Of a stretch of DNA of 64,000 nt, positions 4,740 through 62,466 are shown one piece after another; within the stretch, counting starts at the first letter, position 1, and every line of letters starts with the position of its first letter. Position numbers and translations under genes: made by a program. The notes beneath the pieces are model-generated. The model worked only from the letters and a program-made list of their open reading frames with translations. It made no database searches and had not been told where the DNA came from. The DNA lies in NCBI GenBank assembly GCA_977017575.1, contig CDRNVI010000039.1:124001-188000 (forward strand). Reading direction: 5' to 3'. This stretch comes from Paramoeba atlantica (Eukaryota > Protista > Discosea).

Positions 4740-5349
4740 TAGACTTCGGCGTTCGCATCACTATAATCCCCCACTCTTTTATTGAATCCACGGTTCCGGT
4801 GTTGGTTTCCCATGTTGCGGTTAATTCACTTTTGGTAGTGGTCAATCCCCGTTTTACGAATTTCATAAACCGCTCTCCGTGATATACCATATTTTTGTTC
4901 GATTTGCTTTACAGAACTTTGAGATCTGCGAATTTCTCGTTTCTCGAATATAGTAAGTTCAGTACGCTGTCGTTTTTCCTGAACTGTTACCGTCGGGGTG
5001 TTGTTAATAATAAGGGATGTGCGCTCCGCTACTTGCGGTTGGGGAGGGAGATTCCGAAGCCAAGTGGTCAGAGGTCCACGCATAGAGTGAACTGTGGTCG
5101 GAACTCCGTCAGTATCTGACATAAGGGTGAAAAGTACGGGAGAAAGAGAGGAACAAGTATACAAATATATATTATCTCCACACACTAAATGCACATCAGA
5201 GGCTTAAAAGCACAAAGCCCTTTGAAGAAATTGGGTAAAAATAGGCAAAACATCTGCTCTCAAAAAAACGCTCCGAAAATTCAACATGGAATTTGTGCAT
5301 ATTAAGGGGGGGGGAGGGAAGGGGGTGCATATTAAAGGGGGGGTCACAG
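4740..5349 (-). mobile_element. Left end of a pogo-like DNA transposon with N-terminal HTH remnant
   Basis: ORF 4826-5194 ends in ELTIFEKREIRR..SVKQIEQKYGISRRAVYEIRK (psq/CENP-B-type HTH). The end TA|CTGTGACCCCCCCTTTAATATGCAC at 5349 has an internally repeated TAATATGCAC. Confidence 0.65.
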
Positions 5350-5351
5350 TA

Positions 5352-6923
5352 TCAGAAGCAATGGTTCACACTGCACAAAAACTATCGAGAAAAGGAGCAG
5401 CGACACCCCAAACGCAATTAATGACAGAAACAGCGATGAAATTTAATACGGAAACAAAATCGTCTCAAACTTCAGGATTTCGCGACTTGTTTCTGCAAAG
5501 CAGAAAACCAGACCACTTCAAAGAAGTTCTAAAAAAGCACGGAACAGAAATTGAGGCACAAATTCAAAAAGAATGTTCCGAGATTGAATATGGTTTAAGG
5601 AAAAATCGGTCTAATCCGTGGCGCACGCTGCGGAGGGTTTGCGGTTCATACAGGGACACCTTTCGCATAGAGACCTCATCGACGAGAGAGACACTTCATA
5701 TTGTGAAGGATTTCTTTGCGCGTATGGGCTCCGATGATCGTGGAGATAAAAACATTACCTTCGAAGCGGTGACCTCCATTAAAATACCGATAAATGATGA
5801 TATTTTTTCCATGGAAGAGCTAGAAGATGGAATAAGCCGGCTCGCGCGCAAGGAATGGGCGCCTGGAATAGATCAAATTCCTGCGGAAGTACTTGCGATT
5901 ATCACGGAACACAAGGATCTGAGAAACGTAATGTTAAATATCATCAATGAAGTTCACCGTAAAGGAGTTTCGCCCGAGTCCTGGAAGGTAGTACTTCAGG
6001 TTCCTATTCCTAAAAAAGGCGACCTGACACAAATTTCGAACTGGCGACCAATCTGCCTCGTCAACAGCGAGGTAAAATTAATGAACGCAATGATTCTTCG
6101 AAGAATGAGACCAGCCATTGAACCGCTTCTAAGGGATAGTCAATTCGGATTTCGCCCGGAAAGGTCCACAGCAGGAGCGCAGAAAATACTTAATGATGTG
6201 AAGATAAGGTCGTCACGCAACAAGAGGAGGGTCGCAGTTGCATTCATGGATTTTGCTAAAGCTTTTCCTTCGGTATCTTTTTATGCAATCCGTGCTGCTC
6301 TTAAAGCTTTTCACGTCGGACCAGCGATCACTAGTATGATAATGTCACTGTATTCCAATCTAAGAGGCATAGTCCAAACACCGTACGGCAATACGGATTC
6401 TTTCCCTATTGAAACAGGAATTCTCCAGGGAGACGTTCTTGCTCCTAATTTGTTTGTGCTTGTTATTGAAAGAATTCTTCACAAAGCGACCGATAACAAA
6501 CCTCCAGGGATTCTGTTGAGGAGCAGCGGGACAAAAAGTAGGGGAATTCAAGAATTTCGATTGAAGGACATTTATTACGCAGACGATATTGCTCTTCTGG
6601 CGGAGACAAAACATGAAATATCCGAAATGATAGAAGCTACGGCTAATGAAGCACAATATGCCAATCTAAGGGTTGCTGTGGGAAAACATAAGACTGCGTG
6701 GATGGCCTTCGGGAAGGTTCCCGGGGGAACAAGAGAACTTCGGGCGGGATAAATGGGAAAGATTACTCTCGTGGATTCCTACCGACATCTTGGTCACCTA
6801 CAAGATGTTACGGCAGCATCCCCCATCAAAGATCGACTGAGATTAACATGGGCAGCGTTTCGCAAGCTTAATGGAATCTGGGCCTCACCACTGAGTGCTG
6901 CTACGAAATAGCGCCTGTTTGAT
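5352..6923 (+). pseudogene. Non-LTR retrotransposon RT (RTE-like), longer copy, two in-frame stops, no endonuclease domain in window
   Basis: FSMEEL..I..L...APGIDQIPAEVL, NWRPICL, QFGFRPERST, DFAKAF, QGD, YADD and the thumb motif DSYRHLG. Stops TAA 6750-6752 and TAG ~6908 are identical to those in the 2.1-3.1 kb copy. Confidence 0.92.
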
Positions 6924-18237: not shown

Positions 18238-21200
18238 TTATGATTTTAGACTACCGGAGTGCAATAGGTCCCTTAAAAGCTGCACTGATATGCGGTGACC
18301 TACCCAAAACCAAAGTTGATCAATTGCCTGTTCAAACAAAATTTCCAAACCCGAAACTAGAGTGCAAGTTGGATGATAGGCTCGAACAAAACTAAGAAAT
18401 GGAGTTAGTGCGGAACAGCAATCGTGCTCTTTCGAACGAATAATTTGTCCAGAATATAGAATTTGAGGGGGACATGAAGCACTCTGTGTGGCAGTGTACG
18501 AAAGATCCACCGCAAGACAATTTCCGGTTTGAAACAAACTATCTGGATAAGAAACAACAGCATGACCAGGAACTGTCGAAATCACGACGGAGGCCCCGCC
18601 AGAACTTTCTTGAAAAGAACAAAGAGAAAAATAATTAATTAAATTAAAATCCAAAATCGTTAAGCTTTCTCCAAGTCCCTGTGAAGTAAACCAAGATAGA
18701 AGCTGTTTCGCACGTTTTAATGAACGGTTCAAAATAAAAATTCGGGTGCAACCAAAGTGTAGTAAAGCGTAAACAGCTGACCGAGCCGAACCGCCAGCCC
18801 CCAAAACATATCCTCGTGTTTCATGAAAGGAATTCACAGGGCAAGATGATAATTCTGAGCATCTCTGAAGATGCCAGTGCCTTAGAAAACGGAAGATTGC
18901 CACCCAATCTGTATTTTCACCGTAGAATGCATCTGCCTCATCCACTGAACCATACTTACGAGCAATCGTATTGATGCACCCAATAATTTGTGCATGTGGG
19001 CTGACATTCCGTAACATTTGAAAGGCCTTTTCCTTGTGAGGTATAGTAATGGAAGCGCCACGAAATGTAGGATCTTCCAAAAGTTGTCCCCACGCCTGAT
19101 CAAAATCAGGACAGTCCACCACGTGATAACTGTGTGGCAAACCAAGAACATGGAACGCCGTGCGATGTAATGTAGGAGAATAAGAATAAGAAATTTGGTC
19201 GCCTACAACATAAAATGTACCGGGAAGTGTCAAGCCGAGCTGTGCTCGCAGCTGATTCATCGCGTGTAGGGTGAGTTGACCAGAGGCCGCGGGAAAAGGG
19301 AGCAACTCGTGGGTGACGGGAGAAAGTATTGTGCCCAGAATGCGTGAAAGAGCCCCGCCGGAGGCAGATGATACTGCCAAAAAAGGTAGACGGTTGTGTA
19401 GAACGGAGGACAGTAATTGTTGAAAACGGTACTGATCGGAGGGACGTGACAAGCCAAGAACAATTTTAACAATGTCACAGCCTGATTGGAGCAGTGAGAA
19501 AACAACGTCGAGGATGTTGAGTTCCGAGAAGGTGATGGAGGGGTCGTGATAGGACCCGACAATGAGAGTCACAAGGGGGAAATGTTGAGGGAGGGAGTAG
19601 GACTGCGCAAGAGAAAGGATGCAGAAAGCATCACGGTTACCATCGTCGAAACGTTGAGGAGATAAAGAAGCATGCTCGATATCGACGAATTCGCAACCAT
19701 AGCGTAGAGCAAGAGAGATCAATTTGGCGTAGTGCTCCGTTGTACCAACGAACTTGCCACCTTGTTGTACTGACCGTACAGTGAATAAAAGATAAAGGTC
19801 TGGGGTAAGAAAACGCAAATATTGAATTTCCTTGGCAACATTTTGAATGCCCGTCGCGCTGTCTTCTAGCAGGTCCGCTCGCAGCTCAACAACGTCGCAT
19901 CCAGCAACCAGTCGCGGAAAATCCCTTTTTAGATGTTGCTCTGACGAAAAATTGTAAGTGGGCAACGTAAGAGATAGCATGTGGGAGCTACGTAAACACT
20001 GAGAATCCCAACGCTTCGTGCTGGAAATAAAATTCAAAAACCGTTCCAAGATATTGACATTTGATTCAATGGAGAAATCGCCTTTGCATTTTACAGACGA
20101 ATTCTCAGACTTTGAAAAACCAAGTATCAAGTACTCATAAGATGTGGCCTTACGCATTTCAGACAGTGCTTTTTCGGAAAGGTGATTAATCCCGTAATCA
20201 TCTAATACAAGAGTACTACACGATAGTTGGCGCACGGGACGTAGTACACTCTCTAAAGTTGAATCAAAAAAGGAAACATTTGATGAAGTGTCTGCTGGAC
20301 GAAAAAGAAGAGAAGACCAAAGCTCAGAATCAAAAAGAGGCGGACATAGGATTAGAGTAACATTTTGTGTGACTTTTGGATGCTGGGCTGGTAGCTTCGC
20401 TAGCTCAGACTTAAAATTCAAAAATATGTTCGGCTCATTAGTCACTAGCTTCCATGAGGATTCTGATAAATCGAGTAAATTCCATCCTTGCGTTCTGTTA
20501 AGCTCACACAGCACTCGCACACACGCGCGCAAGTTTTTTAGATCAATAGAGTTGTTGTAAGGAACAAGATGTAGAACCGTATTTTGAGGCGTGCGGAATT
20601 CAGGGACTCGGCACGTCTTCATTCCTCGTGGTTTCCCAAGTGCGTCACCCAACCCAACGAAGGAAGACGACAAGGAAGATTCAATCGCATCCGTTCCACT
20701 CGCTTTGAGCGAAAGGTGAAAAATTCGGTTCAAGTGGTCCCAAAACTCCGGATAAGTTTTTTCTACACACCATGGGTCGACTATCGTAAGTCCCCCCGGA
20801 ATCCGACAGGACAATATTGCAAATGACATTGCGATGCGGTGATCGCCGTAGCAATAGATGGGCTGAGACTGCCTCATGGAGGCAAATGACTTACTGTGAA
20901 TATCTATCCCATCGTCAGTCTCCTGCGCGTGTACGCCTAGCTTACGCAGTTCCGTGACCATCGCTTGGATACGGTTACTCTCCTTCAAACGTTGAGAGGC
21001 AATTCCTGTGATACGATGCACCAAGCTCACGAAACCCTCATCATTGGATACCACGCTCCCTCTTGTTATTCCACACAACAGCACAGCGGCGGTCATAAAC
21101 GTATCCGAGAGTGCACCCATGTCGATACAAAATCCAGTATTCGACCGCAGACCGTTACCCCCGTTCGAGGCAACCACCACTTTCCTGGCCTCCATACGCA

Positions 21201-24042
21201 CCTCACACCCGAGGGGGCGCAACACGGTGGTCGCAAAGGCCAAATCACCCTGGGTGCGGGACGCGGTCCCCAGGCCCGGAATCACCACCGTGGGGCCACA
21301 GGGGTGAAGCACAGCGAGTGCCATCCAGTAGGATGCGCTGGTCGCGTCGGGCTCGATGAAATACGTCCCGGGGCTGTGGTACGCGCTGGGGGTGGGAATC
21401 GAGTAGGAAAGGGTTTGTGTGGGAGTGTCCCATGTGGGGGTGATGTCAAAACCAAAGTCACGCATCACAGAGAGTGTCATGTTTACGTAGGGAAGGGGAG
21501 GGGGAAGGGGAAGGGGTGTGGGGCTCGGGGTGTGGGGCTGTTGTTCGTCCGTACAGTGTTGTGCGAGGGTATTAAGATTCATAGAGGAAAGGGAGGAGGA
21601 AGTGTGCTGTAAAGGGTGGGAAAGTTTGCTTGAGAATCCAAAGGCGCGCAACAGAAGTGGAGATGGGGAAGGGGTGGTGTGAGGCTGACTGCACAGAAAA
21701 GGTGACACGATAAGAAGGGAGGAAAGGTATTGTGAGGATAAAGAAACATCAATGTCAAGGGTTCTTTGTAAGGACTCCAGTCGATGTTGTAAGTCGAATG
21801 AGGGATACATGCGCAAAGGAAAGTGTAGTCGGCTAGCGTCCAGTGGTTCGTTTGTTGAAGATGAATCGTATTCACCGTCTTCTAAACAAGAAAAGCGTGC
21901 GCCTAAGTCGTGCAACACTTTAAGTAAAGGGAAAATAGGACGGCATTGATTCATTCGTTGACATCCTGTGATTTGTGTGTAGCTGTAATTTTTGTTTTGC
22001 CCTTTGCGATGTTTCGAAGATTTAGTAGTCGTAGACATATCTCTGGAACAAATCTCTTCTCTGTAATCTTCATCAGAAGCAGCAACGCCCAACTCCCAGC
22101 TACTGAAATATAACAAACAAATGGGGAGTAAAAACCGAGACACGATGCCACTGTTGCCGACATAGAGATTTAGAGAACTTGAACTCATTGCGTTCATATT
22201 AAAGTCATCGAAAGACCAATCATGAGGTGAGTGTCCTTGGACAGTAATTGTGTCATCCAAAGAGTGAAAGCGGAAAGGAAAAGTGAAGACGCGTGAACAC
22301 TGTTCGGAATCTGCGCTGTTCTTTTTATCAGATTTCGGGGTAGAATGCTGCTGTAAAAAGTGGCTCAGTTTTTTCAAAGCCTCAATCATTAATAAAGTAT
22401 CAACACTGTACAATAAGCCGTGAAGAGTACATTTCGTGCCACCGAGGAATGCAATAGCCAGTGCGCGATTACTGATCGATTTGCTTCCTGGAGGTGTGAT
22501 GTGTATTTCCTTAGGAATAATGTCTTGACCTATGCCAACGTGCCATGCAGTGCAGTTTACAGACCAAAGAATTAAATCAAGAGAGACGTACCGCGGAGAA
22601 CTTTTACAACACATTCCGAGGCGTTCGAGAAGAACTACCTTGATTTCAGAATTTTGGTTTTTCTTATCACGATACAGAAATGAAATAAAGCGACTCAGGT
22701 TAGAATCGTGTTTCTTTTCCCTGAAGCTAAATTCCTCATAGTGGTCCTCAAAAAATAGCGAACTAGGTGAAGTGATCGGAAGCCCACACGAAGTCAAGAC
22801 ATGCTGCATACGCTGAAGCAAACTAGGCTGCAAAATACCAAGTCTACGTGAGATTCGTCCCTCGGCGACAAGCCCTATACTTACTGCTTCGCCGTGGAGT
22901 AAATAATCAGGAGAAGGAACCTGATCTGAATATGAGGTGTCAGTATAAGTTGAACCTAGACAGCCAAATTTAGCATTGCTTCGGCGCTCGTAACTGGAAT
23001 GGAGAAGGTCGTACGTATATTCTAAAGCGTGGCCAACTGTGTGGCCCAAATTTAACAAACAGCGAGACCCGTTCTGAGACTCTGTGAGATCACCTTGAAT
23101 CAACAACATTTTAAGAGAAATACTTTGGAGAATAATTTCATGCCAAACTGAGTCTGGAATACGTCTTGCACTCTCTGCACTACGAAGCGAAGGTGCCAAT
23201 AACTCAACTTGATCAAAAAAAGAAGTCTTGCCACAAAGCAAGGCAGATTTCACCACTTCAGCAAATCCGTTGCGAAGCTCACGAACCGAAAGTGTCCCCA
23301 AAAATGAGATCGAAACCAACGTCAGGTGCGCGGGATAGAACGACCCAAAAAGATTTTTTCCTGCAGCGCTATTAATCGCGGTCTTCCCTCCAACCGAACT
23401 ATCAACCATACTCAGTAAACTTGTTGGGACATAAACCCAGCGCACGCCACGAAGAAACGTGGACGCCACAAACCCGACCAGGTCCCCCACAACCCCACCC
23501 CCGAGGGCGACCAACACACACTGTCGGTCACAACGCGAGGCCACCAGAAAGTCTTCTAGAGCGTCACGAACCTGTCGACATTTTGCGCCCTCTCCTGCAG
23601 GAATACAAAACGTTTGTATCGGAGAGGTGCTGCGAGCGTTAATGCATTTATCCGATTGTGGTGAAACCAAAAACTCGTTAAGATACGCCTCGAGGGATTC
23701 TGTTACGGCAGGTTGCCAGATTTCGCCCACCCTGGTGTCCGAGATGAGCACATAGGATGAGGCGTCGGAAAAAAGAGAATGGAGGGCGTTTTGTAGAGAA
23801 GAGGTCGAAAAATGGGGGCCGCAATCCGAGGATGCATTTGTGTTGGTTGTTGTATCGGAACGAGATGGAAGGCACTGAAAAAGGTTACATTTGGGGTGCG
23901 AGTGAGAGCCGTAGTGAGTTTCAAGCGTTCTAGTTATTTTCTCTTTTGTGAGATAAACAATGGAACGGGTGTCTTTTCCATGTGTTTCCAACGTTGTATC
24001 AGAGTCTACCCATTTCCATCCCTTTTCACACTCGCAAAACAT
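18238..24042 (-). CDS. ARO1: Pentafunctional AROM protein (DHQ synthase - EPSP synthase - degenerate shikimate kinase - type I DHQ dehydratase - shikimate dehydrogenase)
   Basis: ALGGGVVGDLVGF, VDSSVGGKTAIN, LNLGHTVGHALE, LLHGEAV; PGSKSISNRAL, SSQYLSSLL, RLKESNRI, DHRIAMSF, KTYPEFW; VELRADLL, FTVRS..GGKF, SYHD; SPTLH, GASITIPHKE, NTD, GAGGSARS. First ATG at 24042. Confidence 0.96.
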   Translation of the reverse strand: MFCECEKGWKWVDSDTTLETHGKDTRSIVYLTKEKITRTLETHYGSHSHPKCNLFQCLPSRSDTTTNTNASSDCGPHFSTSSLQNALHSLFSDASSYVLISDTRVGEIWQPAVTESLEAYLNEFLVSPQSDKCINARSTSPIQTFCIPAGEGAKCRQVRDALEDFLVASRCDRQCVLVALGGGVVGDLVGFVASTFLRGVRWVYVPTSLLSMVDSSVGGKTAINSAAGKNLFGSFYPAHLTLVSISFLGTLSVRELRNGFAEVVKSALLCGKTSFFDQVELLAPSLRSAESARRIPDSVWHEIILQSISLKMLLIQGDLTESQNGSRCLLNLGHTVGHALEYTYDLLHSSYERRSNAKFGCLGSTYTDTSYSDQVPSPDYLLHGEAVSIGLVAEGRISRRLGILQPSLLQRMQHVLTSCGLPITSPSSLFFEDHYEEFSFREKKHDSNLSRFISFLYRDKKNQNSEIKVVLLERLGMCCKSSPRYVSLDLILWSVNCTAWHVGIGQDIIPKEIHITPPGSKSISNRALAIAFLGGTKCTLHGLLYSVDTLLMIEALKKLSHFLQQHSTPKSDKKNSADSEQCSRVFTFPFRFHSLDDTITVQGHSPHDWSFDDFNMNAMSSSSLNLYVGNSGIVSRFLLPICLLYFSSWELGVAASDEDYREEICSRDMSTTTKSSKHRKGQNKNYSYTQITGCQRMNQCRPIFPLLKVLHDLGARFSCLEDGEYDSSSTNEPLDASRLHFPLRMYPSFDLQHRLESLQRTLDIDVSLSSQYLSSLLIVSPFLCSQPHTTPSPSPLLLRAFGFSSKLSHPLQHTSSSLSSMNLNTLAQHCTDEQQPHTPSPTPLPLPPPLPYVNMTLSVMRDFGFDITPTWDTPTQTLSYSIPTPSAYHSPGTYFIEPDATSASYWMALAVLHPCGPTVVIPGLGTASRTQGDLAFATTVLRPLGCEVRMEARKVVVASNGGNGLRSNTGFCIDMGALSDTFMTAAVLLCGITRGSVVSNDEGFVSLVHRITGIASQRLKESNRIQAMVTELRKLGVHAQETDDGIDIHSKSFASMRQSQPIYCYGDHRIAMSFAILSCRIPGGLTIVDPWCVEKTYPEFWDHLNRIFHLSLKASGTDAIESSLSSSFVGLGDALGKPRGMKTCRVPEFRTPQNTVLHLVPYNNSIDLKNLRACVRVLCELNRTQGWNLLDLSESSWKLVTNEPNIFLNFKSELAKLPAQHPKVTQNVTLILCPPLFDSELWSSLLFRPADTSSNVSFFDSTLESVLRPVRQLSCSTLVLDDYGINHLSEKALSEMRKATSYEYLILGFSKSENSSVKCKGDFSIESNVNILERFLNFISSTKRWDSQCLRSSHMLSLTLPTYNFSSEQHLKRDFPRLVAGCDVVELRADLLEDSATGIQNVAKEIQYLRFLTPDLYLLFTVRSVQQGGKFVGTTEHYAKLISLALRYGCEFVDIEHASLSPQRFDDGNRDAFCILSLAQSYSLPQHFPLVTLIVGSYHDPSITFSELNILDVVFSLLQSGCDIVKIVLGLSRPSDQYRFQQLLSSVLHNRLPFLAVSSASGGALSRILGTILSPVTHELLPFPAASGQLTLHAMNQLRAQLGLTLPGTFYVVGDQISYSYSPTLHRTAFHVLGLPHSYHVVDCPDFDQAWGQLLEDPTFRGASITIPHKEKAFQMLRNVSPHAQIIGCINTIARKYGSVDEADAFYGENTDWVAIFRFLRHWHLQRCSELSSCPVNSFHETRGYVLGAGGSARSAVYALLHFGCTRIFILNRSLKRAKQLLSWFTSQGLGESLTILDFNLINYFSLCSFQESSGGASVVISTVPGHAVVSYPDSLFQTGNCLAVDLSYTATQSASCPPQILYSGQIIRSKEHDCCSALTPFLSFVRAYHPTCTLVSGLEILFEQAIDQLWFWVGHRISVQLLRDLLHSGSLKS
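21040..21730. other. GC-skew island (C-rich left arm, GC core, G-rich right arm) inside AROM
   Basis: C/A-rich 21040-21270, GC-rich core, then G-tract-rich 21380-21730 on the + strand. Confidence 0.75.
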
Positions 24043-24379
24043 TTTCAGCAAAAATCAGTCATGAGCTCTGCAACGCGTAAATAGTTTCTAAGGAGGGAAA
24101 AAACATTTTCTATATCCAGAGGAATCATTACTTTAAAAAGTCGAAGCTATGGAGTTGTAAAACTATCAAACAAATATTGTCATGTTGCCAAAAGCCTAAA
24201 AGTAGAAAAAAACATTAAAATGTGTTGTTTAAGCCGAATGCAGATGCAAAATATTAATGATTAGCCTTTCAAAAGAAAATCAATCAAGCGAATAAAAATG
24301 AAACGATGCAAGTTCCATATTCCCGTAACCTTATTCCCGTACACTCACAAATGTAGTAAATGTGTAACTCACCAATGCA

Positions 24380-25930
24380 TTACCCGAAAATCAACCCCTT
24401 CATCCACCCCCTTTCACTACCCCCCAACCCTCACTCCTCCACCGACCTCCGCGCGAGCTGCCTCACCTTCCTCTCATACCCCCTCCGGTCCTCCCTCCAC
24501 TGCCTCGCGGCCTCCACATTCGCCGGGCTCTCCCCGTTCGGCGCATCCAGCATCGACAGCACACTGAGCAGTATGCTCCCGACGGTGTGGACCGGGGACC
24601 AGCGCTCCTTGGCGCTCTCGTACCCGAACGCCCCCTCCCCCGGGCTGTGGAGGATACTCACGCAGACCTCCCCGCTGGGGTAGATGTTGGGGTGCCACAT
24701 GGGGGTGAGGAAGACCATGGTCGGGGGGGCGTTCGGGTAGGTCCGGGGGAAGGACAGCGTGGCACGGAACAGGCCCCCGTCGTGGGGGGTGTCGTGGGGG
24801 CCGACGAGCAGGACGTCCCACAGGAAGGGGTTGGCGTCGTCCCGGAGACCGGCGGAGAGGCCGGGGAGGGGGTGGCGCTGGAGGTCACGGAGCTGGGAGA
24901 GCAGGAGGAGGGTGGCGTGACGGGTGGTGGGGTTGGGGGGGAGGGCAGGGGGAGGGGGGGTAGAGGTACGCGTAGGGGCAGAGGGGTGGGTAGGGGTAGG
25001 GGTAGAGGGGTGGGTAGGGGTAGAGGTGTGGGTACGCGTAGTGGTAGATGTGTGGGTACGAGTAGTGGTAGAGGGGTTGGTAGGGGTAGAGGTGTGGGTA
25101 CGCGTAGTGGTAGATGTGTGGGTACGAGTAGTGGTAGAGGGGTTGGTAGGGGTAGATGTGTGGGTACGCGTAGTGGTAGAGGGGTTGGTAGAGGTAGGGG
25201 TAGAGGTGTGGGTACGCGTAGTGGTAGGGGGGTTGGTAGGGGTAGATGTGTGGGTACGCGTAGTGGTAGAGGGGTTGGTAGAGGTAGGGGTAGATGTGTG
25301 GGTACGCGTAGTGGTAGGGGGGTTGGTAGGGGTAGATGGGTTGGTTGGAGTAGTGGTAGAGGTGTTGGTAGGGGTAGTGGTAGAGGGGTCGGTAGAGGTA
25401 GGGGTAGATGTGTTGGTAAGAGTAGTGGTAGAGGGGTTGGTAGAGGTAGGGGTAGATGTGTGGGTAGGAGTAGTGGTAGAGGGGTTGGTAGAGGTAGGGG
25501 TAGATGTGTTGGTAAGAGTAGTGGTAGAGGGGTTGATAGGAGTAGTGGTAGCTGAAGGGGTAGCAGTGTTAGTAGGGGCAGTTGTAGTGGGAGACGTGGT
25601 GGTAGTGGTCGGGGTAGTGGTCGACGTGTTCGTACGGTCAGTGGTAGGTGTGTTGGTACGAGTACGGGTAGCTGAAGGGGTAACGGGGTTGATAGTGATG
25701 GAAAAGGGGGTAGAGGTGTTGGTACCGGTATTGGTAGAGGTGATATTAGGGGTAGGAGTGGATGTGTTAGTACGGGTAGGGGTAGAGGTGTGGGGGAGAG
25801 AGCATTGGGGGAGGGAAGAAGGAGAAGTGGTATTGTCAGGGTGGCGGTTGGGTGAGGACGTGACAAGAGGACGTGAAGCACGGGAGCAGGTAGGAGGGTG
25901 GGGCAGGGGTGGGGTAGTCATCGCTTGGGT
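24380..25930. other. GC-skew island spanning the E2 gene
   Basis: C-tracts 24380-24680 (partly 3' UTR), switch near 24700, G-tracts with almost no C from 24900-25930. Confidence 0.85.
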
Positions 25931-26005
25931 AGAGTTTGCGTGCAGGTTGGATAGGCGTTGAGCAGAGTGGGTGTTGTTTTTTGTGGAAGTTCTTTTGCGG
26001 GGCAT
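24431..26005 (-). CDS. Ubiquitin-conjugating enzyme E2 (Ubc7/UBE2G-Cdc34 type) with long Thr/Pro-rich N-terminal repeat
   Basis: [30 protein letters not shown] (active Cys), acidic loop [21 protein letters not shown]. Confidence 0.9.
24950..25560. repeat. Degenerate coding minisatellite (~27-48-bp units; [11 protein letters not shown](ST)NPS)
   Basis: Repeated ggtagaggggttggtag...gtgtgggtacgcgtagt units. Confidence 0.9.
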
Positions 26006-55519: not shown

Positions 55520-56860
55520 TCATGACGACGGGTGTGTCCCCTCTCCATGAGAAGGAGAGAACTGCAGCGCCGCGGGACACCTCGCCGTACAAAACTCCAC
55601 CAGCTGCAACCGAAACCCCACATTCTCTAAAATATAATCCGACCCGTTACTCCCCCGTACCCACCGGCACGCCGTCACTAAATCCACCCCACACCGCTCC
55701 ACCAGATACGCCACACACAGAATCGCACTCCGGTTCACCCCTCCAAGACAATGCACCAGCACCACCCCAGGATTCCCCCCCTCCCCCCCCTCCCCCCCTC
55801 CCCCCGCCCTGACCTCATCCACCAACCCCGCAAACCCGTCGTAGTGGTACACCAGGATCGGGTACTCCCCGTCATCCAGCGTGTGCACCCCACGGTAGGC
55901 GATCCCCAGCGCGGGGTACACCGCGCGGCCCCCGAGCGCGCTGGTGTCCCCCGCGGCGACATTCACCACGTGGGAGATGCCGTGCGCGGTGAGCTGCGCC
56001 CCACACAGCGCAGCCTCCTCCCCGCTGAGGCACAGGAACGGGGTGACGGGGCGGATCACCGGGGGGCGCAGGGTGCGGCGCAGGGCGGAGCCCACGTCGA
56101 GCTCCGCGGCCAGGCGACGGACCAGGTCGCCGTGCTGCCGGGTGAGGGGGACGGGGGTGACGCAGGAGAAGAGGGCGTGGTCGGGGGGAGTCGCGGTGGT
56201 GGTGGTCGCGGTGGTGGTGGGGTAGACCGGGGGACGGGGGTGAGACACGGGGGTCGCGTGGAGGGGGGGGTGGCCGTGGGGGTAGAGCGTGGAGGGGGTA
56301 GGGGTGGGGAGGGGGTAGGGGGTTGTGGTGGTGGTGGTGGTGGTCGTAGAGGTTGTGTGGGGATGAGGGAGTACTGTGGTGTGGGGGTTGTTGGTGTGAG
56401 TTGTGGGGGTGGGGGAGGTGGGGGCGTGGAGGTTGTGGAGGAAGGGAGGGGAGAGGTCGGTGGTGGTGGTGGGGGGTAGGGAATGGGAAGGGAGAGTAAG
56501 GTGTGTGGAACGGTCGGGTAGGGGGGAGTGGTAGGGGGAGAGGGAGGAGGAGGAGGAGGAGGTGGGGATTTCGGAGGGAAAGGTGTCGAGTCGGGTTGGG
56601 GGGAGACTTGGGAGAGAGGTGGAGGAGAGGGATCGTAGAGGGTGGCAGGGGGTGGGGGGTACGGCGAGGGGGGAGGAGGTAAAGGAGGGACGAGGGCCGA
56701 AAGGGGTGCTACCGTCGTGATGTTCCGGAGAGCCGTCGGCCATCTCACACAAGGCGGCCATCTCACACATAGGGGTGTGGGAAAGGGAGTCGAGAGGGAA
56801 GTCTTGGTTCACGTTGCGTGCTTGCAGGGGAATGCGATGTAGGGGTGAAATGTCGTCCAT
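55520..56860 (-). CDS. Dual-specificity phosphatase with Pro/Thr-rich N-terminus
   Basis: VTPFLCLSG, GISHVVNVA, LDDG, VHCLGGVNRSA (Cx5R), ILENVGF. First in-frame ATG at 56860; the frame is open to 57067. Confidence 0.88.
   Translation of the reverse strand: MDDISPLHRIPLQARNVNQDFPLDSLSHTPMCEMAALCEMADGSPEHHDGSTPFGPRPSFTSSPLAVPPTPCHPLRSLSSTSLPSLPPTRLDTFPSEIPTSSSSSSLSPYHSPLPDRSTHLTLPSHSLPPTTTTDLSPPFLHNLHAPTSPTPTTHTNNPHTTVLPHPHTTSTTTTTTTTTPYPLPTPTPSTLYPHGHPPLHATPVSHPRPPVYPTTTATTTTATPPDHALFSCVTPVPLTRQHGDLVRRLAAELDVGSALRRTLRPPVIRPVTPFLCLSGEEAALCGAQLTAHGISHVVNVAAGDTSALGGRAVYPALGIAYRGVHTLDDGEYPILVYHYDGFAGLVDEVRAGGGGEGGEGGNPGVVLVHCLGGVNRSAILCVAYLVERCGVDLVTACRWVRGSNGSDYILENVGFRLQLVEFCTARCPAALQFSPSHGEGTHPSS
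55560..56800. other. GC-skew island over the second DSP
   Basis: C homopolymer tracts 55560-55850, GC core 55850-56150, G-tracts 56150-56800. Confidence 0.88.
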
Positions 56861-57261
56861 GACGTGGTGAGGAAAGTTACCACATGCGTGTTGGGTGGTG
56901 AGAGATAAGCATAGCGCAAGGAGTACGAAATATGAAAAGGAATCTTTACAGTTGGTTCTAAAAAAGAAGCTAAGTAGGTCGCGCACAAGATCTACACGTT
57001 GCAATTTGCGATCTCTTAAGATAATGTTTTCGCAAAAAATATTGAGAAAAATGACTTGTGTATGCAACCCATTTATGAAATCACATGTTTTTCGCCCTAA
57101 TCTATATTTATGTTTTAGTTGGACTAAAATGTTGAAGCAAATAGCAATCTACGTACAGTGAAAGACGCAATGGAATACAAATATTTACTCATGTCGTATT
57201 ATTTCGTATAAAACAGCTCTGCAAGTTCCTTTGAAACGCATTCGCTTCTATTCTGACTTCT

Positions 57262-60200
57262 CTAAGCCATAATCATTTTCTCTCGAATAGTGGCATGAAG
57301 AAGACATAGAAAATCCACATAAGAAGTCTCTCCACAGTTGCGATCTTCCACCATGCGTTGCCACCACAAGGACTCCAGCGAATCTACACCCTCCCGGATT
57401 AACTCTAATCGGGGCAATATGTTACCACGGGTGGCTCGGATTTCATTCCACGCGGCACGAAGCCGAGGATTCACCTCCTCGCGAAGCATCCATGCGTCGG
57501 TAATTGTCTCTGAGGAGGGAAGCACCGAAATTCCAAACAGCTGTTGTAAACATTCCGATGTGACCTGATTTCCCACCCACAAATAGGTCTTCCCAAACGC
57601 CAAGTCGTCACACAGATAAACCCCATCGCTGCGAATTCGCTCCGCGTAGAGTTGCGTCCACGGGGGCATGACACAGTTCGCAAAAGGGGAAGGTGGTACG
57701 GAATTGTCCGCAAAGTCGGGAGAGGATAGCAGCGGAAACGTGCCTACGGAGGGAGTGCTCAACAAATTCGTCAAGTCGTACGTTCGAGGATAGAGGTAGA
57801 GAAGAAGCTGGGAGGGAGGAAGAGCGAGAAGTCGGTGTAAATCGCGTGCACGGTCGTCCACTCGCACATCTGTTTGTGAAGGTTGCCGAAGAGCAAAGGT
57901 TTTCAAACTAAGGTATAGAAAGAGGGGAAGAAGTTTTAGATTTTCCGGGAGGATGAGCTGCCCGGCGTGCTGACTGGAGGAACAATAACGGCGGTAGGAA
58001 AATAACATCTCCGTCACTTGCTGATTCATAGCCTCTCGTGCCTTTGTTAGACCCTTTGCAACTACGGCTCGCAGGGAGCGGTGAAGGTAACATGCCAAGG
58101 TGGCCTCCAAGTCACACCCTTTAAACAGCTCAGGAATTTGTGCCACGACGGGGACGCGAAGAGAATGCACGCGCAGCCGCCGGTCCCCTCGCGGTGTGGT
58201 GTAAAGCAGCGCGGCTTGAAGGTACCACTCTGTTGGCGACTCAAGGCGTCCCTCGTGCTCGAATTCAACAAGAAAACTTTGGTTCGGATACAGCGCCGCG
58301 AGGTCCATGTCTTTGGCGTCCTGGGAGAGGTAGTGTCCACTGTAGCTTGCCACACGGGTCCCGTTGGACACTCGTACGCGTAGGATCGCACCATGCGCCG
58401 AGGGCTGGGCAAGTATTTCAGTAAGTTCATGCTTCAATCGTGAGCTATCTCGACTGGGAACGAAGTGCGACATTTCCAAAATGTTACCAGAGGAGAGATG
58501 AGAGAGTTGGGACAGTGTGGGAAGTTCCACAAAGCTTGACGAAAAATTGATCCAGTCGAAGGATATTTGCCGTTTTGCAGCTTCTGTCGCAATGGTGGTC
58601 CAAAAACCTTCACGAGGAAGGAAGGCCTCGCGATCATTATTAACACCGATGAGTTTGTTTTCTTCCCGAGGTGTCAGGGCACCAAGTCCAGTGTTACATC
58701 CCTGAGTAGTGGAAACGATTACCCGACCTCCTGTGTCATGCAATATGAGTTGTGCACATCGCACTGCTGCGCCCAGAGCAGAACCCCGTTCAGTACAGTG
58801 AGCGGCATAGACTGGTAAATCTTGAACAAAACGAAGTGCCACGTCAATTTCACGCTCCAATGAGAGCCAACAAAGCTGATTGAACGGAAGAGGGACAAAC
58901 GGGTTGTCTGGCTCATTCATGCAAACTTGCGCCGCACGTCGGGACGTGGCATCAGTTCGCATGACTCGAAAGTCATAGAAATGAACGCTCGATGCGAATG
59001 TGACAAACCCCACATAAACCTCCGGACTGGTTTGCGCCGCCACACGAAGCGCCTGTGTCAATGCCTCAACCATTGCGCCAAGATACCCGGACGTTGCATC
59101 ACCCACCCCACACGAAATATCCAACACAAACACCACATGAAGCGGGTAGGTCGCCGCCGGGGCCGTCTTCCCCACTCCCACCACCCCCTCACTCTGCCCA
59201 CGCCGCAGGGCATAATCCGACAACCCCTCGACATTATACTCCACACTCCCGACCGTGATCTCGGCCCGGGTGCCGTAGTCCATCCGTCGCCCCGTCGCGG
59301 GGTCCAGCCCGCACCCATACCCTTGCGGGACCTCGTTGTCAATGCGACAGTACGTGCACCCCCACCTCCGGCCTTGCTCGGTGAACGTGCTGTGGCAGGA
59401 GACGTAGGCCCGGCAGCGTCGGCAGCGCACGGGGCCGTGCCCGGGGACCGGGAGCACGACGGGCACGGGGCCCTCTCCGGGGCCCGGGGGTGCCAGCGGG
59501 GTGAGTACGGCAGCCCAGGGGAGCTGGGCGCCCTCGAGGACTTTGCGCTCGAGCGGGGCGCGGTAGCAGGAGAGGCGCACGTAGCGGGGGCTGGCGTTGC
59601 CGTCGTCCTGGGTGAGGGAGGAGGAGCCGGCAGGGGGGGGGAGGGTGTCGGCGGCGGCGGTGCGGTAGAACGCACGGGTGCCGTTGCTGGGGAGGAGGTC
59701 CCGGGAGGGGTTGGGGACTTGGGTGGGGTCGATACGGCGGGAGGTGGAGGGGGGGCGGGAGGTGGGGGAGGTGGGGAGGGCAGAGGTGGAAGAAGGAGAA
59801 GAGGAGGGAAGGGGGGCGTTGGGGGGAAGGGAGGACAGGATCTCGGGGGGGTATTGTGGGGTTGGGGGATTGGGGTAGGGTTGATGGGTTGTGGGGTGGG
59901 GTTGGGGGATCGGGGTGTCGGGCTGGTGGGAAGGTGGCATGGGGTGGGGTGGGTGTGCGGTGATGGAGGGAGTGGGTTGGGACAAATTAGAGAAGGACGG
60001 GGTGTTCGTTGAGGCTGAGATTTGCGGTGGTGCGCTGAAATGTGTACCTGTTGGAGCAGACGTCTGCCACGAGGGTGTAGTCTGTGGCAGATCGACTTGT
60101 GGGGTTGCTTGGAACGGAGCAGATGCGGGCGTAAGATTTTGGGGTGTGGTGAGACCTGACGCGCCACCGGGAGAGGCGATTTGGTGCACAGGAGGGTGTG

Positions 60201-62466
60201 TAATATTGGGATACCCAACATGTGCGATGCTGGGATAGGTTGATTCACGTTCCATTGTGTGCCTGGAGAGTGTATTCGCCACTTGGTGAGATTGATTATT
60301 CAGGTAGGACGTGCTTTCCAGCGGAGATGCCACAGGGGTATTTGCCAAAGAGTTATGCGTAGAGGAACCAATTTTCGAGCTAGGCTGTGATGTGCTCACT
60401 GGGGTAGTCGAGAACGTTTGAACAGGAAGTGTCATAGGCTTGGATGTCACGTTCAATGGAGTTGTATTTTGTTGAGAGGTTGGTAATGCTGCAAATGTGG
60501 GATTCAAAGTTTGGAAGATATCCTGAGATCCCGAAGCGCCCGTGTGGTTCTGAAACTCAGTTCCTACAGGTCCTTGAGCCCTTTTCTCCGGTTCGTCCGA
60601 TGATAATGCATCTCGGACACGATCAGGAGTGGAGGACGTACGCGCCGCTAAGTATGCAGTGGAAGCGTCTTCTGACGATTTCATGGTGGATGAGGGAGCG
60701 TCTGCTCTTTCAGGACTATTAATTACATTTTTTGAGCCGGACAAAAAATCACTCAATCGAGCTTCGGCACCGGAAGTTACCAATGAACCGTTCTCCAACT
60801 TGGATTTATCGACACCTGGGATACTATAAAGAGAAGACAGTGGGGTTGTGCTTGACGCATCCTTTGTCTTAGGCGCGAAATCATCCGACCAAAATTCAGC
60901 TGAAGTTTCAGAACTCCTTTTATTTATCGTGGGGTCACCAGGGGACACATCATTGTCACGAATTGTACTGGAAATGGAGGCTGTGTGATCGAAACTTAAT
61001 GGAGGCACAATACTGGGTGACTGATCAGATTTTGAAACCAAAGGTAAGGAATTAGGCCCAACAGAAGCCATGCCATCTCCAGAAGCTTTCGGTGACTCTC
61101 CTATGCTATGTTTCTGTGGGTCAGGAGGTCTATGCAATTGGTGACTACGGATAGCAGAAGGCCCTGCGGACAAGGAAGCGGATTCAGAAGCAAAGAAAAG
61201 ATGATCCATCTTATTTTTATTGGGTGACTCGATTATCTTTGACTTGGGTTCCACGAAGTGTGCCGTTTCGTGTTTCGGAAATTCAGCCGCAGAAGTGGGG
61301 GCCTTAAAAACTAAATCTGGCGCTGATTCAAACGACGTGTCAGGAGTTCTTCCCGATTGGAGTGCTTTGGTCGTTGAATCCACTTGTCGAGTACTGGGTA
61401 CTTTCGGAGAAAGTTGGACGTCACCAAACAAGTGTTCAATGCCCGTAGATGGTGCCTGGGGCTGGGTTATAGGCTTTGAATAGGAAGAAAGAGTCGAAAA
61501 GGGATCTTGAGACGGTGCCAGTTTTTGAACTGTAGTTTCAGGTACCCCAATGTTCGTACGTACCGTTGGTTGTGGAGGGACTGTAGAGACGGATGGCTGT
61601 GAAGCAAAGCCAGCAGTATTGGGCTGTGCTTGCTGAACGAAAGTGTGTCCCGGAGCTGGTGGCGCGACATTTGGGGTAGAATATCCCGAAGACGGTACAG
61701 GAGTTATGGAAGCCATCGCAGTAGGATACGTTGTCCCGGAGGGATAGGAAAACAAACCTGTCGATTGTGCGATTGATGGTTGAGCCAAGACTTCCCCAGA
61801 AGGGCGTGCGACGCCCCCAGGGGTAGCAACAGGCTGGGAAATAGACGTCGGTTGTGGTGCGCTTTCTCCGAAATACTGTGTAGCCTCCACAGTTCGAGCC
61901 ATCGATGGTTGCATCGGTGTAGGATAGGGCTGTTGTAAGTTATTCGCCGCAGAAGGAGCGGATATGGATCCCGGAAAAGTGGCAGTCGGCCCAGGCGGAG
62001 GCGGAGACAGATTCGAACCGGAACATTGCGATAGGTTTGGAAAAGCAGCCCTTGCCTGAGTAGGTAAATTCGGCAATGAGGGCTGTGGTATGGATTGCGT
62101 CAGGCCAGCGGGAGGATGCACTCCGAGGGAAGGATTTTGTGGTGGAAACGGCTTGGTGGTTTGAGCCATGAGAAGGGGTGCGTGCGACGGCGCAAGCGAC
62201 CCAGGGATGGAGGACTGGTAGGTAGCCGGGTTATTTTGTGAAAGCGAGGGATCATGCATTCCATATGAGGGAGGCGTGGGAGCCACATGGTATGGGACGG
62301 TCCCGGTCGGGTAGGAAGGCAAGGCTGCGTGCACAGGTTGATAGGCGTATGTAGAAGGATGCTGTTCCTGTGGAGGTGATTGCTGTGTCCGTAGAGAAGG
62401 ATCATTGGTCTGACCAGACGGAGAAGGCAATGGATTGGATGGGTACGGGTAAGGATAAGGATTCAT
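57262..62466 (-). CDS. SEC24: COPII coat subunit Sec24 (C/D-like) with very long Pro/Ser-rich N-terminus
   Basis: RIDPTQVPNP, zinc finger PVRCRRCRAYV..WGCTYC, trunk VFVLDIS, LPENLKLLPL, gelsolin-like C-terminus SYVDFLCLLH. Confidence 0.95.
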   Translation of the reverse strand: MNPYPYPYPSNPLPSPSGQTNDPSLRTQQSPPQEQHPSTYAYQPVHAALPSYPTGTVPYHVAPTPPSYGMHDPSLSQNNPATYQSSIPGSLAPSHAPLLMAQTTKPFPPQNPSLGVHPPAGLTQSIPQPSLPNLPTQARAAFPNLSQCSGSNLSPPPPGPTATFPGSISAPSAANNLQQPYPTPMQPSMARTVEATQYFGESAPQPTSISQPVATPGGVARPSGEVLAQPSIAQSTGLFSYPSGTTYPTAMASITPVPSSGYSTPNVAPPAPGHTFVQQAQPNTAGFASQPSVSTVPPQPTVRTNIGVPETTVQKLAPSQDPFSTLSSYSKPITQPQAPSTGIEHLFGDVQLSPKVPSTRQVDSTTKALQSGRTPDTSFESAPDLVFKAPTSAAEFPKHETAHFVEPKSKIIESPNKNKMDHLFFASESASLSAGPSAIRSHQLHRPPDPQKHSIGESPKASGDGMASVGPNSLPLVSKSDQSPSIVPPLSFDHTASISSTIRDNDVSPGDPTINKRSSETSAEFWSDDFAPKTKDASSTTPLSSLYSIPGVDKSKLENGSLVTSGAEARLSDFLSGSKNVINSPERADAPSSTMKSSEDASTAYLAARTSSTPDRVRDALSSDEPEKRAQGPVGTEFQNHTGASGSQDIFQTLNPTFAALPTSQQNTTPLNVTSKPMTLPVQTFSTTPVSTSQPSSKIGSSTHNSLANTPVASPLESTSYLNNQSHQVANTLSRHTMERESTYPSIAHVGYPNITHPPVHQIASPGGASGLTTPQNLTPASAPFQATPQVDLPQTTPSWQTSAPTGTHFSAPPQISASTNTPSFSNLSQPTPSITAHPPHPMPPSHQPDTPIPQPHPTTHQPYPNPPTPQYPPEILSSLPPNAPLPSSSPSSTSALPTSPTSRPPSTSRRIDPTQVPNPSRDLLPSNGTRAFYRTAAADTLPPPAGSSSLTQDDGNASPRYVRLSCYRAPLERKVLEGAQLPWAAVLTPLAPPGPGEGPVPVVLPVPGHGPVRCRRCRAYVSCHSTFTEQGRRWGCTYCRIDNEVPQGYGCGLDPATGRRMDYGTRAEITVGSVEYNVEGLSDYALRRGQSEGVVGVGKTAPAATYPLHVVFVLDISCGVGDATSGYLGAMVEALTQALRVAAQTSPEVYVGFVTFASSVHFYDFRVMRTDATSRRAAQVCMNEPDNPFVPLPFNQLCWLSLEREIDVALRFVQDLPVYAAHCTERGSALGAAVRCAQLILHDTGGRVIVSTTQGCNTGLGALTPREENKLIGVNNDREAFLPREGFWTTIATEAAKRQISFDWINFSSSFVELPTLSQLSHLSSGNILEMSHFVPSRDSSRLKHELTEILAQPSAHGAILRVRVSNGTRVASYSGHYLSQDAKDMDLAALYPNQSFLVEFEHEGRLESPTEWYLQAALLYTTPRGDRRLRVHSLRVPVVAQIPELFKGCDLEATLACYLHRSLRAVVAKGLTKAREAMNQQVTEMLFSYRRYCSSSQHAGQLILPENLKLLPLFLYLSLKTFALRQPSQTDVRVDDRARDLHRLLALPPSQLLLYLYPRTYDLTNLLSTPSVGTFPLLSSPDFADNSVPPSPFANCVMPPWTQLYAERIRSDGVYLCDDLAFGKTYLWVGNQVTSECLQQLFGISVLPSSETITDAWMLREEVNPRLRAAWNEIRATRGNILPRLELIREGVDSLESLWWQRMVEDRNCGETSYVDFLCLLHATIREKMIMA
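59000..60000. other. GC-skew island inside SEC24
   Basis: C/A-rich 59000-59330, GC core to ~59600, G-tracts 59600-60000. Confidence 0.85.

Follow-up and report, generated by a model that had tools for sequence, protein, structure and literature searches.

The window analyzed here, 64,000 nucleotides of contig CDRNVI010000039.1 from the Paramoeba atlantica assembly GCA_977017575.1 (positions 124,001 to 188,000, forward strand), contains on its minus strand an intronless gene for AROM, the multi-enzyme fusion of the shikimate pathway. This AROM has lost every recognizable shikimate kinase feature. We consider it probable that the product is a kinase-less polypeptide that otherwise works, with the kinase step supplied in trans, probably by a stand-alone kinase of the organism's own. 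The open reading frame (ORF) opens at TTG 24051, from which residue numbers are counted, and its first ATG is at 24042. The gene and its parts are as follows, with 6HQV being the solved Chaetomium AROM and EPSP standing for 5-enolpyruvylshikimate 3-phosphate.

18238..24042, minus strand: AROM gene, a single uninterrupted ORF, 1934 aa from the first ATG
22603..23619, minus strand: 3-dehydroquinate synthase domain (PF01761, PF24621), aligned to 6HQV residues 81–460
20740..22491, minus strand: EPSP synthase domain, from PGSKSISNR to EKTYPEFW (PF00275, E 1.6e-61), aligned to 6HQV residues 601–849
19981..20739, minus strand: kinase-position stretch, aa 1105–1357, 253 aa of orphan sequence where other AROMs have shikimate kinase
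19249..19980, minus strand: type I 3-dehydroquinase domain (PF01487, E 1.5e-36)
18241..19218, minus strand: shikimate dehydrogenase domain (PF08501, PF01488, TIGR01809)

The kinase-position stretch is bounded by EKTYPEFW (aa 1097–1104) and MLSLTLP (aa 1358–1364). The shikimate kinase family SKI (PF01202) is absent from the Pfam matches of the full-length protein, and the segment 19957–20730 (minus strand), searched alone, gives zero Pfam or NCBIfam matches even at E ≤ 10. No PDB sequence match to the stretch is found by phmmer, and an exhaustive phmmer search over 1.84 billion representative proteins returns only its own copy in P0001, the 99% identical AROM of this organism in an ENA assembly. 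P0001 is also the sole other AROM in the homology search without the motif GMRxxGK[ST]; the remaining 59 of 59 carry it, together with a precomputed PF01202 match. The pattern [GA]xxxxGK[ST] is absent throughout our protein. When the protein is aligned by HMMER to 6HQV, residues 81–285, 291–460, 601–849 and 1037–1466 of the solved structure are covered, and residues 850–1036, which are its kinase domain, are skipped exactly and have no counterpart. A first-pass annotation of this DNA had described a spacer here with neither a Walker A nor a GGG motif; this description holds in any frame.

Individual positions within the stretch can be compared with the kinase domain of other AROMs at four places.

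20614..20637, minus strand: GKPRGMKT, candidate P-loop relic in the alignment anchored on both flanking domains; register ambiguous
20539..20577, minus strand: VLHLVPYNNSIDL, the P-loop position of the first-pass annotation; it forms strand one of the predicted domain, ahead of a long helix
20329..20355, minus strand: LILCPPLFD, at strand 3 and the GGG shikimate-binding motif, where other AROMs read xxxCGGGIVE
20026..20043, minus strand: RFLNFI, which retains the kinase domain's last helix; site of the 11 columns aligned by hhalign (below) and the point at which the HMMER alignment to 6HQV resumes, at residue 1037

LILCPPLFD is placed alike by all three alignments, with PPL standing in for the GGG motif, and the conserved Arg (three columns), Asp, Lys and Glu columns of the kinase are altered in the stretch. 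RFLNFI, which all alignments likewise take as the last kinase helix, is its only segment with detectable similarity. For the P-loop, one alignment sets VLHLV-PYNNSIDL against strand 1 plus the P-loop and matches GWNLLDLS to the xFIDLD strand, in agreement with the earlier assignment of VLHLVPYNNSIDLK to the P-loop. The anchored alignment instead favors GKPRGMKT, in which Lys-Thr is kept and the glycines are lost, and sets TQGWNLLDLSE against the GWxxFRxxE helix. The earlier placement is one of two or three registers that are equally weak, and a kinase motif is restored by none of them.

The remaining domains are well preserved. The Pfam families DHQ_synthase, DHQS_C, EPSP_synthase, DHquinase_I, Shikimate_dh_N and Shikimate_DH occur in AROM order with E values of 1e-61 to 1e-19 (DHQ_synthase and DHQS_C at aa 148–348 with a second stretch further on, EPSP_synthase to aa 1107, DHquinase_I at aa 1381–1601, Shikimate_dh_N at aa 1615–1696 and Shikimate_DH from aa 1739). 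NCBIfam agrees, assigning aroB, aroA, aroD and the AROM-type shikimate dehydrogenase (TIGR01809). This order and the colinear alignment to 6HQV reproduce the five-domain AROM layout, with the kinase position filled by a stretch of similar length. Motifs tied to catalysis by established knowledge of these enzymes were located in all four domains. The 3-dehydroquinate synthase has the NAD and metal motifs GGGVVGD, GGKTAIN, GFAEVVK, NLGHTVGHALE and HGEAVSIG; the EPSP synthase, which contains long low-complexity inserts, has PGSKSISNR, KESNR and DHRIAMSF; the dehydroquinase has the catalytic dyad of His (GSYHD) and Lys (DIVKIV); and the shikimate dehydrogenase has SYSPTLH (SxSP), ITIPHKE with its Lys, GENTDW (NTD), GAGGSARSA and NRS. 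Counting the columns conserved in at least 95% of the 59 other AROMs, 21 of 22 are retained in 3-dehydroquinate synthase, 69 of 82 in EPSP synthase, 11 of 13 in dehydroquinase and 22 of 24 in shikimate dehydrogenase, and only 5 of 17 in the kinase region. Both the motifs and these counts bear out the first-pass statement that catalytic motifs are preserved in the four remaining domains.

One change within the EPSP synthase lies in the loop GNSGIVSRF (22132–22158, minus strand; aa 632–640), where Ile replaces the Thr of GNAGTA, a residue conserved in at least 95% of the 59 other AROMs. The position is taken to match Thr97 of the E. coli enzyme, which belongs to the pair of residues changed in EPSP synthases that are insensitive to glyphosate; binding of phosphoenolpyruvate (PEP) or glyphosate might accordingly be altered.

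In the working model that we favor, the third (middle) domain, shikimate kinase, would have degenerated to an orphan sequence of about 255 residues. It would no longer bind ATP or shikimate, so AROM would be at most tetrafunctional; we infer this loss of kinase activity from the sequence alone. The 3-dehydroquinate synthase, dehydroquinase and shikimate dehydrogenase domains would take the 7-phosphate of 3-deoxy-D-arabino-heptulosonate (DAHP) to shikimate, and the EPSP synthase would convert shikimate 3-phosphate to EPSP, leaving between the two halves a gap that AROM itself would not bridge. Shikimate would be released by AROM and come back to it after phosphorylation in trans. Because the conserved EPSP synthase only makes sense if shikimate 3-phosphate is available, kinase activity would have to come from elsewhere, and its supply in trans is a sound inference. 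The most likely supplier would be a stand-alone kinase of the same organism, after the model of Aro1 and Dqd1 in Candida albicans. The stretch itself would most likely be kept because its frame has to stay open for the two domains downstream of it to be made; it may in addition act as a spacer holding domains apart. The tetrafunctional AROM of the first-pass annotation is supported in this respect by the lost kinase features, the four intact domains and the purifying selection described below.

Several results weigh against this model. No stand-alone shikimate kinase is found in any of the six frames of the window or of L001, an independent contig carrying the gene (ENA ERZ24900291), and a search for stand-alone kinases with a kinase-domain profile gave no replacement-kinase candidate. 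The sequence of the stretch does not suffice to demonstrate that it descends from a kinase. A local hhalign comparison with a profile of 21 AROM kinase domains aligns 11 columns only, at RFLNFI, with a probability of 1%; the score against the shikimate kinase hidden Markov model is matched by 72 of 2000 shuffled sequences; and global hhalign against the kinase profile performs no better than for 300 shuffles. Since all three comparisons are nil, sequence homology to the kinase cannot be claimed. The structural match is weak, and the model on which it is based is biased toward the kinase fold, since genuine kinase domains made up the alignment used to build it.

That model, built with the AROM alignment, has a mean predicted local distance difference test (pLDDT) score of 54.7, with its first third disordered; the part with GKPRGMKT is predicted to be disordered (pLDDT 23–39). 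The secondary-structure elements predicted for the stretch come in an α/β order. Foldseek finds no significant match to the model in the PDB. VIA-align, run over 48,161 chains, places shikimate kinases in its best seven rows (Z 5.4–4.4), with unrelated folds just below, at 4.3. Two other attempts were set aside: a single-sequence AlphaFold model (pLDDT 38.6) was too poor for use, and a language-model atlas search stayed below its recognition threshold, matching leucine-rich-repeat clusters in what we take to be a composition effect. The same anchored interval spans 326 aa here and about 290 in other AROMs.

Kinase ancestry is favored indirectly, by where the stretch lies, its length, its retained last helix, the α/β order and the weak, alignment-biased structural match. 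The stretch is likely a degenerate kinase remnant, and it may retain a kinase fold. The pseudokinase scaffold proposed in the first-pass annotation goes beyond this evidence: its suggested comparison of the spacer with shikimate kinase yielded the kinase rows of VIA-align and nothing significant from hhalign or Foldseek, and sequence similarity is statistically nil. Homology and exhaustive searches for nearer AROM relatives sharing the dead domain returned P0001 only, and a quick tree puts this AROM on a long branch next to a second long-branch sequence, a placement that is uninformative.

The best match to the AROM kinase-domain profile is P0181 (E 2.7e-55), a stand-alone protein of 212 aa from a JGI metagenome. 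Because its P-loop, IGMKGAGKT, is AROM-like, environmental eukaryotes do have kinase modules of AROM type that stand alone, or else pieces of split AROMs.

The AROM gene lies within a row of co-oriented, intronless genes of kinetoplastid type, encoding an E2 enzyme, an HMG-box protein, an ABC transporter, a Sec24C-like protein and dual-specificity phosphatases. Because the closest named relatives of the Sec24C-like protein are trypanosomatid Sec24C proteins (37–41% identity), we assign the genome that carries the AROM gene to a deep-branching kinetoplastid. The Sec24C-like gene (57262–62466, minus strand) encodes 1734 aa. Its Sec23/24 domains start only at about residue 1010, after an N-terminal extension of about 1000 residues that has no Pfam match; trypanosomatid Sec24C proteins are about 970–1050 aa long. 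Two GC-rich blocks (24001–26000 and 56001–60000; GC 0.55–0.60) show a strong positive GC skew on the plus strand, of up to 0.43, and overlap the minus-strand genes for the E2 enzyme, a phosphatase and the Sec24C-like protein. An ORF with a reverse transcriptase domain (5286–6752, plus strand; RVT_1, E 3e-29) lies upstream of the gene run. In AROM itself, about 140 residues without any family match precede the 3-dehydroquinate synthase domain (23620–24042, minus strand); the first ATG may be the true start, or this part may be a targeting extension. The C terminus (…SLKS) is not a type 1 peroxisomal targeting signal (PTS1).

Contig L001 is 99.4% identical to the window over the gene. The two versions of AROM show 17 synonymous and 14 non-synonymous differences, and the resulting ratio of non-synonymous to synonymous differences per site (pN/pS) of 0.25 places the gene under purifying selection; the kinase-position stretch alone has 2 + 2 differences, too few to judge selection. 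L001 also has three single-base homopolymer insertions in the dehydrogenase part (window equivalents 18856, 18657 and 18504), which shorten its gene call to 1636 aa; long-read error, not a broken allele, is their most likely cause.

It is unlikely, in light of this selection, that AROM is in the course of being lost from a reduced symbiont, with the kinase gone first, no kinase supplied, and the other domains either idle or serving a pathway that runs up to shikimate or dehydroshikimate. EPSP synthase is indeed the most altered of the four survivors (13 of 82 conserved columns, including the GNAGT Thr to Ile), and the related Perkinsela sp. CCAP 1560/4 is reported to be without AROM. However, the stretch has diverged past detection, which would take far longer than neutral decay would leave the four other domains 85–95% intact at invariant columns, and the ORF remains open across 1934 codons with a pN/pS of 0.25 over the gene.

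A second alternative keeps the kinase in trans and assigns it to a partner cell. Here a kinetoplastid endosymbiont of the amoeba would export shikimate and import either shikimate 3-phosphate or a host-made kinase, so that two organisms share one pathway. This would account for a conserved EPSP synthase, which needs shikimate 3-phosphate, beside a dead kinase domain, and for the failure to find a kinase gene in the window. Shikimate 3-phosphate is charged, however, and we know of no transporter for it. In the published Perkinsela genome, AROM is reported to be missing altogether, as are DAHP synthase and chorismate synthase (Butenko et al., 2020, Table S3; PMC7052976), so the known outcome in an endosymbiont is full loss of the pathway, not sharing. 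We regard a shared pathway as quite unlikely, and dependence on a partner cell as the less likely of the options in trans. If it were true, the endosymbiont would keep six of the seven steps, the amoeba host or an imported host protein would provide shikimate kinase, and the dead domain would mark a point of metabolic lock-in of the symbiosis.

Alternatively, the stretch could still be a kinase of an unrecognizable, non-canonical kind, for example with GKPRGMKT as a deviant P-loop, in which case the protein would be pentafunctional. It is near the size of a kinase domain (326 versus about 290 aa), has the predicted α/β order, draws shikimate kinases in the top seven structural rows and keeps Lys-Thr in one register. 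Yet the Gly that precedes the P-loop Lys, the GGG motif, the conserved Asp and the three Arg columns are all replaced, recognition by profile, language-model or structure search is in no case significant, and the candidate P-loop falls in a part predicted to be disordered. This makes a surviving kinase very improbable.

The missing kinase domain is not an artefact: no other frame is open across the stretch, and no indel separates it from its counterpart in the independent assembly. Both other frames contain many stops and neither GK[ST] nor GGG, and L001 differs by four substitutions there, so the compensating frameshifts that the first-pass annotation had named as a possible hiding place for a P-loop were looked for and none was found. 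The possibility that an assembly frameshift, an unrecognized intron or a chimeric contig masks a normal kinase domain draws on the homopolymer errors of L001, which show that such errors occur in data from this organism, albeit elsewhere in the gene; it is largely refuted, as the frame runs unbroken through the stretch into both flanking domains and the neighboring genes are intronless, as in kinetoplastids.

With a kinase-less AROM complemented in trans as the preferred reading, the presence of an AROM gene would not guarantee all five activities. AROM is a textbook multi-enzyme fusion and is usually scored as steps 2 to 6 of the pathway once the gene is found. Metabolic reconstructions of prokinetoplastids, such as one in which all shikimate-pathway genes are counted as present (PMC7052976), may need a check at the level of domains. 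No AROM with a degenerate kinase domain turned up in our literature search. Next to that of Candida, this would make a second documented kind of AROM with a dead domain, and because a different domain is affected and the decay is far deeper, the case bears on whether AROM domains persist for channelling and scaffolding or merely through linkage. If the organism is an endosymbiont, the supplier of the kinase, self or host, would be a testable point of metabolic integration.

The closest known parallel to such an arrangement is Aro1 of Candida albicans, whose dehydroquinase domain is catalytically dead and can be deleted without a growth defect, its function being replaced by the stand-alone type II enzyme Dqd1 (PMC9074039). 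Among the species of Candida, the presence of DQD1 goes together with a lost catalytic dyad (Stogios et al., 2022; PMC9074039). In both proteins one AROM domain lacks its catalytic residues, the four others are intact (and, in Candida, essential) and the dead domain is still carried; supply of the missing step in trans by a separate gene is established for Candida and proposed here by analogy. The dead dehydroquinase of Candida, however, is still recognizable, folds and has few active-site substitutions, and its inactivity and replacement were shown experimentally, whereas the presumably dead domain here is the kinase and is degenerate beyond sequence recognition.

Diplonemids, euglenids and two free-living prokinetoplastids, PhF-6 and PhM-4, are reported to have AROM, and Perkinsela sp. 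CCAP 1560/4 to have none (Butenko et al., 2020; PMC7052976, Table S3). Those AROMs come from the same phylum-level lineage as ours, have the same domain order and a similar identity of about 30% to the AROMs of other eukaryotes, and belong to a pathway whose DAHP synthase and chorismate synthase are separate. In contrast to ours, they are described with a shikimate kinase domain and counted as steps 2 to 6 (PMC7052976). As cited in PMC6029752 and PMC4758236, Acanthamoeba has a four-function AROM arrangement (Henriquez et al., 2015) and is likewise a protist that departs from the five-function pattern; in those citations, however, it is a rearranged fusion of domains rather than the decay of one domain in place. 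The fungal repressors QutR/QA-1S, GaaX and TanX descend from the kinase-dehydroquinase-dehydrogenase module of AROM and have an inactive kinase-like domain, which Pfam misses in GaaX paralogues (PMC10512348). They are separate three-domain regulators in which all domains are thought to be inactive, whereas the protein described here has all five positions and keeps the catalytic residues in four domains, which sets it apart from the QutR/GaaX type and beside Candida Aro1.

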